Shown here: one piece after another, positions 46,021-50,001 of the stretch
Layout: each line of letters starts with the position of its first letter
Position numbering within the stretch: position 1 is the first letter of the stretch
NCBI GenBank assembly: GCA_965202585.1
Contig: OZ241828.1
Span: 51,460,001 to 51,524,000 of the forward strand
Direction of reading: 5' to 3'
Length of the DNA: 64,000 nt
Source: Thalia democratica
Taxonomy: Eukaryota
The notes under the pieces: generated by a model
The model's input: only the letters and a program-made list of their open reading frames with translations
The model's database searches: none
What the model was told of the DNA's origin: nothing
Translations under genes and position numbers: made by a program

Positions 46021-46328
46021 GTGAGTTGATGTTTAATCTAATAAATTCCTTATTTTAATAAAAATTTGTTTTATTTATTCCTGCTCTAAATAATTTTTAC
46101 TTACTGTTTTATTTTTTTGATTAAACACTTTTATTTTAGGTTTGTTTAATACTGAAAGTCTCTTATAGAAAAGAAATATTAAAATGTTTCTAATTAACTT
46201 CAAAATAAAGTAAACACTTTAAAAATGTACAATCATAAACCTTCTTTTATTCGCTTAACTTAATGCTTTTGTTATTCCTGATGCCAAATCTTGTTAACAT
46301 TCCAATATATATACTTTTAATTTTTAAG

Positions 46329-49300
46329 TCACGTGACGAGAGAGGAGGGGGAGAACACGGTTGCGCAACCGCTTTCAAACTGCCTCTTTTGGCTTTTGCG
46401 CTGACCGCGTTCGCAAGGAGGGCCTTGTCCAGCGCATCGCTGACGTTGGCTCCCAAGTTAGTTCACCTCTATCAAACAAATAAACTTCAGTCAGTTTCTA
46501 TTTATATATTACTTAAATAAAAAATGTTTTTTAATAAGTTTATTTTCTTTTTTTTGTTATATCAATTTTAATTTTGCTATAGTTATGTGACTTAATAGAA
46601 TGTTGTTTTATTTTAGTGAATAAACCTTATTTAAATAAATGGAGGTTTTATTTTTGGGAAATCTTTAGATAAAATTACCTTATGTAATCCTATATTTAAC
46701 TTTTCCTCATCATTTAAGCCAGTTTTTTCACTTTTCAGCTTGGACGCGTTCTTGTTCGGGCTGCACTCCGTGTTCAAGGGCGACATCCGGGTGCAGTCGC
46801 ACAAGGACGAGTGGGTGATGAGCGACGTCAACTTGATGAAAAATGTCGTCCAGCCTGCAGTCAGGACCGCTTTGAAGCTGCACCAGGACCACTTCACCTG
46901 TTCGTTTGATTTTTTGTTGAGTTATTTTAAATTAAAAAAAGTATATATAGTTCTTTTATTGTTAATTTGATAATTCATTCCATTTATAAATTTATTAAGC
47001 TTTAAAGTTTTTTCTGGTAAATTGTTTAAAGTGTTTAGAACTTTTTTAATAGTTTTTCTATTTGTTTATTAATTTAAACTGTTATTTAGTTAACTTGTTT
47101 ATAACAACTTGACAGATCCGGACGAGTTTGAGGAGGACGCGTCACTTTACGACTCGATCGCCGAAATATGCGAGGAGATGGTCATCACTCACGAGGGGGA
47201 TCCCCTGTGGCGAAGATCGGTGCTTGGCAACGCGCCCAACTTGCTCGCACTTCGGTTCGTTGTGTAAAATATTTATTCAGTTCTTGTAGAGTATTGTAGG
47301 TTACATAAAAAATTTTTTTTGTAAACTATATAATTTTTAAGATGTTTTCAAAAACCTCAAATTTAAAAAAATTTAAAACAACCATTACTGTATTTGTTAA
47401 AAGAAGTATCATACATATATCAAACAAGCTATGATAATTCCAACTCATACAATTCACAAACACTGATAAAAAACTCTTCTGTAAATCTTATCATCCAAGA
47501 AGGTATAAATAACTTAATGACAAGATAAAAGAAAAAAAATATTTAAAAAATGTAACAAAAAACATTTCATTTTTTCTTAAACTTATTTGAGTACTTTTTT
47601 AGTAAGTCCTGTCAAAAATTGTATCTTACTAAACCAAACTGAATTGAAATTGAAATAAAATTATACTGTAGTTTAAAGTTTTAAAATATAAAATGATGTA
47701 GTGATCGAATGTAAAAAATATCTAAATACTTGTACTATAGAACTTTGTTGTACTAATATAATTCTATAGCATAAGCATTGAGTTAATTTTCACATTCGAT
47801 TTTTACGTCATTTTATATTTCAAAACTTTAAACTACAGTATAATTTTATTTCAATTTAAATTTAGTTTGATTTAGTAAAATATAATTTTTAACAAGACTT
47901 ACTACAAAAGTGTTCAAAAAAATGAGGAAAAAAATAAATTTGTTTTGTTATATTTTTAAAATAAGTTATGCGCCGGAAAAAAGCTGGTTTAAAAAAATTA
48001 TTACAACTAAAGAGCCACATACTTATCAAGATATTAGAAGATAAAAGTTTAACCATTTCAAAAACATAAATAAAAACCCCTTCACAGGAGGCAGGTTTCG
48101 GAGGCGTTTGTGGACCAGTACAGCGTGGTGAAACTGCAGTACAAGTCATTGGGTTTCACCCTGGTCCGTGTCAACCGTGAGTGCGTCAGAGGGTTGTGGG
48201 CCGGTCAGCAGTCCGAACTGGTGTTTTTAAGGAACAGAAACCCGGAGAGGGGTTCCATACAGAACGCCAAGCAGGTTTTGAGGAACATGATTAACTCCTC
48301 TTGCGACCAACCTATTGGTTAGACTTTGTTTTAGTTTTATTATACCATTTTCAATTAAGTTCATATAAGTTTAGATTATTCCGTTTTTTAATAAACTTTT
48401 TCGAAATAGCACAAAATTTCTTTTTCAATATACTAATGATTTTCAAATTATTTGGTTTGTAATATAAAAATGAAATTATTTTTTAGTTTTATTGTTAAGT
48501 CTTAACTTTTTAGTTTTTGTTATAAAACTTTTCATTTATTATGGTACCAAATAGTTCATATACTACTTTGATATTAGTAGTGACTATGTCCTTGAAAACT
48601 AAATGAAAAATTAAACTTAAAGTAGTTAGGTTTTATTTTTGTCGAAATTTTTTGAAGAGCCAATTATACCGCATATTTTCTCTAATAATCAAGCTAACTT
48701 TGATTGGTTTGTTTTTTAATGATCTTAAAGCGATTTTAATCCTGGCTTCTAAAATAGGTTATCCTATTTACGTTTCACCGCTGACAACGTCCTATGCTAC
48801 TTCGAATGAAGATTACAACAAAATTATTTTCAAGCCTCTGACTGTGAAAATTTTTCGAAACTGGTTTACTTCTATGGCAAAATGGTAGTATTTAGTTTCA
48901 TTAAAACTTTTCTGTTTTCCTATTTTATTAAGTCATAGACGTTTATATTTCTTCGTAGTCACATTTTTATAAGAAACTGTTTTGTATAAATTCAATCACA
49001 TATGTATTTACCATAACTATGAAATGAAGTATTTGCTTTTATTCTTCAGTTTTCCATTATTAAAATGAGTAAAAGTATTTAGTGAGATATTTGTTTACTA
49101 ACTAAAATCTTTTACTGTTAGTATATGTAAAAAGTTTAAATTTATTAAAATAAAGTATGAAAATTTATCACAAGTTTCTAGAAGTTTAAAAAATTTAAAT
49201 TATAAAATTGTTCAAAAAGTAATAAATAGTAAATAAAGAAATATTTTAAAATACGGAAATTAATCAATACAACAATTAACCTAAATTATTTTGCGTCTAA

Positions 49301-50001
49301 TATTTAAAATTTAATTAAAAAAAAATATCTATGACAACAGTATCCGTGAAAGTTGCACTGGTGGGTGCAACAGCGGTGGCGGTTATCATGGCAACCCATC
49401 ACCTGGTAACCAGCAACCGTCTGTCATCAACATTCCTATGACAACACTGGTGCATCGCACTCCGTCTATAGCTGGTTTGTTTTCCAATTAAGAATGAAGT
49501 ATAAAATAATTTTGTTTTGGTATAATTTTTGTCAACTGAATATCTTGTGTTACTTAACTATTTAAAAAGCAATATACATAAAAGATTTCATTGTTGAAAG
49601 TATTTTAAAAAGAATATTTTTCTTGATACAAAGCAGACTTAATTCTAACAAAGACCAATAAAACTGTTGTAGTGAGCAACTTGTCTTCGCTGACTAGAGA
49701 TCATCAAAAGCAAACATCAGGCAAGCAAAAAACACCCGTCGTCAATCAGTCGTCTGGTTCCTGCCAAATATCTGATAAAAAACCCCCTATTTCAATACTC
49801 AAGCCCGGTATCAGGTTTGTAAATATTTATAACTGTGAAAATTCTGTATATTACTTCGAAGTTTTCTTGTAGATAGTTTTATAGTCATTAGATTTTAATT
49901 TTTCAATTTTTTTCAGCGACAAATCTATTGGGAGCTCAGTGCATAGCGACGAAAAAACATCACCTCAAAAAAGTACATTTGGAACGACGTCAAAATTATG
50001 A
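46329..50001 (+). CDS. PCNX: Intact duplicate of pecanex exons 38-45 (partial gene, expression status unknown)
   Basis: Exons 46329-46456, 46739-46899, 47116-47254, 48088-48317, 48758-48884, 49341-49474, 49673-49814, 49917-50001. Lengths, phases, splice sites and stop codon match copy A, with no frame disruption. The homology is certain; whether it is translated is not. Confidence 0.55.
47540..47963. mobile_element. Foldback (near-palindromic) insertion specific to copy B
   Basis: Arms of ~200 bp are reverse complements (e.g. TTGAAATAAAATTATACTGTAGTTTAAAGTTTT / AAAACTTTAAACTACAGTATAATTTTATTTCAA). Absent from the matching intron 40 of copy A (358 bp vs 833 bp). Confidence 0.8.

Follow-up and report, generated by a model that had tools for sequence, protein, structure and literature searches.

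Related systems and the locus

Partial pseudogenes that lie in tandem segmental duplications and evolve in concert with their parent genes are known from human, where the pairs CYP21A1P/CYP21A2 and GBAP1/GBA1 are examples. Here we consider a locus of the tunicate Thalia democratica. The window, by which we mean the whole stretch of 64,000 nucleotides (nt) that was analysed (assembly GCA_965202585.1, contig OZ241828.1, positions 51,460,001 to 51,524,000 of the forward strand, numbered here from its first letter), contains the last exons of a pecanex gene twice. Copy A belongs to the working gene, and copy B, whose exons are marked by primes, is a second copy without the 5' part. Exons 38'-45' of copy B are intact and differ from copy A mainly at synonymous positions, and the adjoining exon 37' is a pseudo-exon. 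We assign a probability of about 0.5 to the reading that copy B is a real partial paralogue still exchanging sequence with functional pecanex alleles.

The locus resembles the two human pairs in several respects. Copy B is part of a tandem segmental duplicate and has no 5' part and, on this reading, no function; the identity between the copies is patchy, with candidate tracts of recent exchange, and some alleles are common to both copies. In contrast to the human pairs, however, eight consecutive exons are undamaged here, with a ratio of non-synonymous to synonymous divergence (dN/dS, omega) of 0.07 at dS 0.08, which is cleaner than conversion by the neighbouring copy alone predicts, and one exon, apparently outside the exchanging region, is heavily damaged.

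The pecanex (PCNX) family consists of large multi-pass membrane proteins of the endoplasmic reticulum with the C-terminal domain Pecanex_C. Copy B fits this family in that exons 39'-42' match the domain profile PF05041 and the exon structure is common with distant relatives. Unlike the family members, it encodes the last 381 codons only, without the membrane-spanning part or a demonstrated start. The Drosophila member, pcx, is one of the maternal neurogenic genes of the Notch pathway; females that are homozygous mutant reach adulthood (PMC9645253).

Tandem duplication

Self-BLAST and a MAFFT alignment of the 64-kb window revealed a tandem duplication with a period of 19,694 nt. Its units are as follows.

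25715-45408, plus strand: tandem unit A, containing part of pecanex intron 36, exons 37-45, a convergent acidic gene and a tail (self-BLAST, MAFFT)
45409-64000, plus strand: tandem unit B, cut by the window end (self-BLAST, MAFFT; B-specific pieces recur in the independent run X1)

Each unit contains pecanex exons 37-45 on the plus strand, the acidic gene on the minus strand and a tail of about 9 kb. The edge of the duplication lies inside pecanex intron 36, 147 nt past exon 36, which ends at 25567. Unit B begins in this intron and lacks the pecanex promoter and 5' exons. There is no N gap at the join of the units, 45408/45409. The window is AT-rich (about 27% G+C) and its exons are richer in G+C.

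A direct repeat of about 110-250 nt lies within intron 36 (25740-26100); in it, positions 25995-26106 are similar to 45486-45601 and to 25740-25860. The duplication edge at 25715 falls at the start of this repeat, which may have been the source of homology for the original unequal exchange.

Coding integrity of exons 38'-45'

The exons of copy B and their counterparts in copy A are listed below.

46329-46456, plus strand: exon 38', one missense difference from A, V32A
46739-46899, plus strand: exon 39', four synonymous differences, Pecanex_C positions 36-87
47116-47254, plus strand: exon 40', D103E and one synonymous difference, Pecanex_C positions 89-133
48088-48317, plus strand: exon 41', eight synonymous codons (9 nt), no missense, Pecanex_C positions 134-209
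48758-48884, plus strand: exon 42', R261K and one synonymous difference, Pecanex_C positions 211-227
49341-49474, plus strand: exon 43', A296T and five synonymous differences
49673-49814, plus strand: exon 44', identical to A
49917-50001, plus strand: exon 45', stop codon included, one synonymous difference
27833-27960, 28329-28489, 28564-28702, 29061-29290, plus strand: copy A exons 38-41, same splice joints in RNA contigs
29738-29864, 30058-30191, 30389-30530, 30634-30718, plus strand: copy A exons 42-45, same splice joints in RNA contigs

The eight exons of copy B total 1146 nt, their 381 codons are open, and the A-B codon alignment contains no disabling mutation. A preliminary description of this DNA had reported 20 synonymous and four missense codons between the copies, eight synonymous and no missense changes in exon 41', and intact splice sites. 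The recount gave exactly the same numbers, and every AG and GT site, as well as every donor hexamer, is the same as in copy A. The proposed assignment to the Pecanex_C region is also correct: exons 39', 40' and 41' match PF05041 with 73, 47.7 and 121 bits (cut-off 27) over profile positions 36-209, the match of exon 41' having E = 6e-35, and exon 42' extends the coverage by positions 211-227. Thus the module spans essentially the whole domain.

Between the copies, dS is 0.080 and dN 0.0057 in exons 38-45 (Nei-Gojobori; omega 0.07, Fisher p = 1.7e-9), and omega falls to 0.02 in exons 39', 41' and 43', where dS is high. Neutral evolution of copy B since the split should have produced about 35 non-synonymous changes, compared with the five that were counted. 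Introns 38-44 differ at 7.6% of positions and contain 17 indel events in 1452 aligned nt, versus none in the exons.

Conversion from the neighbouring copy A does not by itself explain these values. Such conversion erases synonymous and non-synonymous differences alike, and thus predicts omega of about 0.5-1, not 0.07. The synonymous bias must then come either from selection on B or from variants that had arisen in a working gene. The former possibility, that the B module itself is expressed and translated and that selection acts on it directly, deserves a place, if a tentative one. The low omega over all 381 codons, the lack of indels together with the intact splice sites, and the nearly complete domain are what it would predict, as are the destruction of the adjoining exon 37', the synonymous bias of the changes on the B branch and an open frame of 403 codons that begins at 46263 and continues, once spliced, to the stop codon. 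The points on the other side concern the start of the supposed protein and the RNA, and are given below.

Exon 37 and pseudo-exon 37'

Decay of copy B is concentrated in its first exon.

26100-26333, plus strand: exon 37 of copy A, functional, 78 codons, phase 0 to phase 0, open frame
45788-46020, plus strand: pseudo-exon 37', two stops, 1-nt deletion, about four missense codons (alignment; same lesions in an X1 contig)

In RNA contigs, exon 37 is joined to exon 36 and to exon 38. Its counterpart in copy B, 233 nt instead of 234 nt, carries the nonsense changes TGG>TGA and TGG>TAG, the frame-shifting deletion and about four missense codons, so that the damage noted in the preliminary description is present in the alignment as reported. 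The same lesions occur in a contig of run X1, which has the deletion at 26265 together with 26228C and 26249C (copy A coordinates), and an intact A-type exon 37 coexists with the pseudo-exon in this run. Thus the pseudo-exon and the B-type pieces are real sequence that exists outside the assembly, and not assembly errors.

It had also been proposed that decay stops abruptly at intron 37'. For exons this stands, as there are 18 substitutions in the 233 nt of exon 37' versus 25 in the 1146 nt of exons 38'-45' (p = 7.5e-5). The contrast is much weaker in non-coding sequence, with 15.4% divergence around exon 37' versus 12.2% in introns 38-40 (p = 0.10). The same comparison weakens an older-stratum model, in which the region of exon 37' would be twice as old as the rest.

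Patchwork divergence between the units

The divergence of A and B is very uneven. It is 0% in intron 43, 3.4% in intron 41 and 13.8% in intron 40. In bins of 300 nt, the index of dispersion of mismatches is 7. The following stretches are the clearest.

49442-49833, plus strand: identical A-B run of 391 nt, covering the end of exon 43', intron 43', exon 44' and the start of intron 44'
61727-64000, plus strand: tail stretch, 99.8% identical to 42131-44404 of unit A

Other identical runs of 418-555 nt are situated near the window end. Such runs contrast with introns that diverge by 11-15%. For comparison, the longest identical run in 2000 random placements of the 818 mismatches was 272 nt. The tail stretch comprises 2.3 kb at 0.2% difference, versus about 5% just upstream, and continues past the window end. 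It is a candidate for the most recent exchange, and 49442-49833 is another apparent tract of recent exchange. The patchwork suggests that the units have exchanged sequence repeatedly and recently.

Pecanex haplotypes in other samples

Words of the region were found in 13 public runs, including marine metagenomes and metatranscriptomes. The material consists of Logan contigs of other samples, none of them from the sequenced animal, and four runs were compared with both copies. RNA is represented by X7 and X8, two metatranscriptome runs of one wild sample with another haplotype; neither this sample nor that of run X5 (below) is known to carry both A and B of the window type.

The contigs of X7 and X8 represent spliced pecanex. 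One spans exons 36-37-38-39 and another exons 40-45, and their GT..AG joints fall where they were predicted. There is one type of pecanex transcript, in which exon 37 is intact and spliced to exon 38. This exon 37 has five states in common with the pseudo-exon against copy A, and none of the pseudo-exon's lesions. A comparison of 868 nt in exons 38-44 gave 32 differences between the transcript and A, 27 between the transcript and B, and 21 between A and B, which corresponds to branches of about 13 (A), 8 (B) and 19 (transcript). The transcript is thus about as distant from one copy as from the other, which shows that there are functional pecanex haplotypes with a divergence as deep as that of A and B. 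More than half of the 21 A-B differences (about 13) fall on the A branch, which is that of the working copy.

Run X3, which is labelled as a different organism, is of type A, with a match to copy A of at least 99.7% over about 3.5 kb. Its contigs differ from copy A at 0 of 320, 2 of 216, 0 of 281, 1 of 261, 6 of 1943 and 0 of 278 positions, and its shares of B words (0.28 and 0.55) are those that A alone would supply (0.273 and 0.50). Thus X3 has no B-specific DNA, and the copy number of the unit may be polymorphic. In its sole contig for exon 39, two listed diagnostic sites have the B letter, and the difference counts per contig point to a third such site. B-type letters are present, then, in genes that are necessarily functional.

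Run X1, the richest of the runs in words of the region, contains A-type pieces (25744-26174, exact, and intron 40) and B-type pieces (45501-45844, 46091-46355 and 47268-47574; the pseudo-exon with its deletion is included). Its exon contigs are mosaic: exon 40 is B-type, exon 41 is B-type except for the A letter at 48238 and 48313, and exons 43-44 are A-type. Word depth in X1 was considered as a count of A and B copies and dropped, as the values are inconsistent (exon 37, 90.7 versus 168-257; intron 40, 202.6 versus 49.2) and the summed word depth of Logan is not a copy number. The fine mosaic of A and B letters in the wild transcript was also rejected as proof of recombination, since the three sequences fit a star tree; a comparison of the window copies with X1 and the transcript showed no violation of the four-gamete rule.

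X5, with 47 Mb of contigs, comes from the same organism, and the enrichment of its word shares for exons suggests a transcriptome. It contains 0.12 of the words of a 4.1-kb stretch and 0.55 of those of exon 41'. A-type mRNA alone would give 0.139 and 0.50, and with B-type mRNA present the shares would be 0.25 and 1.0. The observed values fit A-type mRNA alone, which is a weak indication.

Two further observations concern individual sites. In exon 41, a cluster of four nucleotide differences in 7 nt (48163-48169 versus 29136-29142) is entirely synonymous, CTC GTG AGA versus CTG GTC CGT. Copy A and X3 have one form of it; copy B, X1 and the wild transcript have the other. The cluster may have arisen in a multi-nucleotide event, or it may represent an old haplotype block. 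In exon 38', the wild transcripts and an X1 contig have the missense variants H10P and A15D (positions 46357 and 46372) in common against both window copies. Amino-acid change is thus tolerated where the module begins, ahead of the Pfam match.

More distant sequences were retrieved by protein search with exon 41'. Four Tara Oceans metagenome contigs of about 520 nt (L001-L004) are about 88% identical in nucleotides and 99% in amino acids, with alignable flanking introns, and come from a sister species. Their presence in open-ocean metagenomes implies that this animal group is common in plankton samples. They polarise few sites only, and with homoplasy. Two other contigs (L005, L006) have 37-85% amino-acid identity and are too distant to polarise the four missense sites; the pecanex exons are single-copy within them.

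Proposed origin of copy B by duplication and exchange

One scenario accommodates the duplication, the patchwork and the haplotypes. A 19.7-kb tandem duplication starting in pecanex intron 36 would have produced the promoter-less partial copy B. In a very polymorphic population, interlocus gene conversion and unequal crossing-over may then have moved sequence between the units, and also between them and units on the homologue, including divergent functional alleles. Variants now seen in exons 38'-45' would have been screened by selection while inside a working pecanex gene. This would leave many synonymous and few conservative missense differences without any protein made from copy B. Here we infer the direction and timing of the exchanges, and also the lack of expression of B.

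The fate of exon 37' may be explained by its position. Copy A has a repeat insertion that is absent from copy B.

26622-27821, unstranded: repeat insertion of 1.2 kb, high-copy, in a (TA)n tract of intron 37 of A, absent from B (alignment gap; word depth about 1e5 in X1 and X3)

Exon 37' lies in an island of 0.9 kb between the duplication edge and this repeat/(TA)n indel, which is a natural boundary for sequence exchange. If exchange fails in the island, exon 37' would have decayed because exchange stopped there, and the island, once diverged, would stay isolated. The ATG at 46263 would then be incidental. The repeat itself attracts metatranscriptome contigs, for example one of 551 nt at 94.5% identity, and thus its family is transcribed.

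In the preliminary description, capture or conversion from a functional allele was one of three options. It fits best, given the patchwork, the transcript equidistant from A and B, and the B letters in X3, and these same observations favour a working gene over copy B as the source of the variants.

Several facts weigh against origin by exchange with functional alleles. It needs divergent functional alleles as donors. Haplotypes of one type vary very little from sample to sample (about 0.3% between X3 and A, and no difference between several X1 pieces and B), so that the deep functional diversity rests on the metatranscriptome and a few X1 contigs. No haplotype joining B-type exons 40-43 to an intact exon 37 was seen in the contigs examined. 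Logan contigs drop minor variants, and absences in X1, X3 and X5 are therefore weak evidence. When the changes are polarised by the wild transcript, the B branch has about seven synonymous and one or two missense changes (A296T, perhaps R261K). This bias has p = 0.0008 under uniform mutation, 0.01 for transitions only and 0.02 for G/C>A/T transitions only. Constraint on the B branch itself is thus modest but real (p 0.001-0.02), and the synonymous bias of this branch, which conversion from copy A cannot produce, holds after polarising. In exon 41', synonymous divergence reaches about 0.17 with no missense change; its protein is 99% identical to that of the sister species, which differs at about 12% of nucleotides. 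On the other hand, the changes of the B branch may have arisen in a functional allele before they reached B.

Another possibility is that copy B is silent and is kept clean by second-order selection, as defects of B copied into the working gene would be a recurrent load. Exchange is frequent and, to judge by the patch in exon 39 of X3, apparently reaches the functional copy too, and free decay of exon 37' outside the exchanging region would be explained. But the selection coefficient would be about the conversion rate times the heterozygous cost, which we estimate at about 1e-7 to 1e-5. A very large effective population size would be needed, and we consider this mechanism improbable.

Start codon and possible expression of copy B

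The frame of exon 38' is open upstream into intron 37'.

46263-46328, plus strand: intronic open reading frame (ORF) extension, 22 codons (MLLLFLMPNLVNIPIYILLIFK), in frame with exon 38'

From the ATG at 46263, the frame is contiguous through exon 38' (85 amino acids) and, when spliced onward to the stop codon at 50001, forms the 403-codon ORF. The frame and the length are thus as had been described. The claim that such an ATG is specific to copy B is incorrect, as copy A has an in-frame intronic ATG at 27779, again with a hydrophobic leader, of 18 residues, followed by exon 38. The window has 3172 AG sites; at 12% of them an ATG lies upstream in frame with no stop in between, and at 3% of the sites the resulting leader is at least 22 amino acids long. 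The start codon at 46263 is therefore no better than chance. Its context is weak (T at -3, C at +4), and the leader is a translated polypyrimidine tract, hence its F, L and I residues. The 85-residue ORF of leader and exon 38' has no record in a public collection of proteins and contigs.

Copy B could be expressed by several routes: from a start in intron 37' with the ATG at 46263, by trans-splicing of a spliced leader onto exon 38', or as an alternative 3' end of the working gene with a junction from 26333 to 46329. Taken together, these routes are conceivable, but we would not expect one of them to be in use. RNA depth over 46046-46239 is zero and there is no loose end at 46329 in X7 and X8, that is, in two metatranscriptome runs of one wild sample. 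The probable transcriptome X5 has no B-specific words of exon 41'. In the second route, the first in-frame methionine would be residue 70, which is inside the domain, and the 16-mer of a Ciona-type spliced leader does not occur in the window. The third would require an intron of 20 kb across the poly(A) site of copy A, the convergent gene and pseudo-exon 37', whereas pecanex introns are 0.1-1.5 kb long; moreover, both modules encode nearly the same protein.

Thus no positive evidence was found for a stand-alone gene with a recruited membrane anchor, the first of the earlier options, and the weak ATG context, the ATG in copy A and the lack of RNA over 46046-46239 speak against it. A related idea is that the headless module is a young gene encoding a Pecanex_C-only protein of about 400 amino acids or less, expressed by the first or the second of these routes and under direct purifying selection, with the useless exon 37' decaying. 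This is unlikely.

The convergent acidic gene and a possible uncollapsed haplotype

The second gene of each unit is transcribed towards pecanex.

33797-36721, minus strand: convergent acidic gene, A copy, last exon shortened by a deletion of 67 nt that shifts the frame
52971-56091, minus strand: convergent acidic gene, B copy, last exon full-length

The gene encodes an acidic (ESDC)n protein. Comparison of its last exon in the two units (33650-34450 and 52880-53730, both on the minus strand) shows a full C-terminus in unit B only. As unit B has the sole full-length copy, there is a reason other than pecanex for its retention, a point in favour of the reading by exchange. In exon 1, the two copies differ by four synonymous and four missense codons, and thus the low omega is specific to the pecanex exons and not regional.

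False heterotype duplications are a frequent error in assemblies of heterozygous genomes and can readily be taken for duplicated exons or genes (PMC8081667). Accordingly, the duplication, or its part from exon 38' on, could be an uncollapsed haplotype written in tandem, with B as the other functional allele. The locus does look like such cases in having adjacent near-copies with allele-like divergence and intact coding exons: the synonymous bias, the 5-14% divergence of introns and the differences in repeat insertions resemble alleles of a hyperdiverse tunicate, and the DNA of X3 is A-type only. However, an allele would keep exon 37 intact, whereas copy B begins with a pseudo-exon that died long ago and that is found also in an independent run, X1, together with an intact exon 37. 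The join at 45408/45409 is gapless, and the damage in the acidic gene is reciprocal and not allelic-looking. An additional small duplication of exon 37 inside intron 37 of the second haplotype would have to be assumed. Hence this explanation is unlikely.

Other repeats

Two more repeats distinguish the copies or samples.

47558-47946, unstranded: foldback element with 192-nt arms in intron 40', B only (alignment; high-copy word depth)

The arms of this element are 81% complementary and separated by a 5-nt loop. The element is a member of a high-copy family (word depth over 4e4 in two DNA runs). A 109-nt element at 44753-44861 has word depth of 2.3e5-2.7e5 in two DNA runs, and one X3 contig skips it exactly, which indicates an insertion polymorphism of a very abundant short repeat.

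Implications

When a gene and its truncated duplicate show a low dN/dS, this is often read as proof that the duplicate is functional. The present locus illustrates how such a conclusion can be wrong: where tandem units go on exchanging sequence in a polymorphic genome, the differences can be variants that come from working alleles. It is also a warning for the annotation of this assembly.

To our knowledge, the biochemical role of the conserved C-terminal domain of pecanex is still unknown, and we know of no stand-alone Pecanex_C protein. If the B module were expressed, it would be a natural dissection of pecanex, with the C-terminal domain acting apart from the membrane part, and if it were a young gene, it would encode the first stand-alone Pecanex_C protein.

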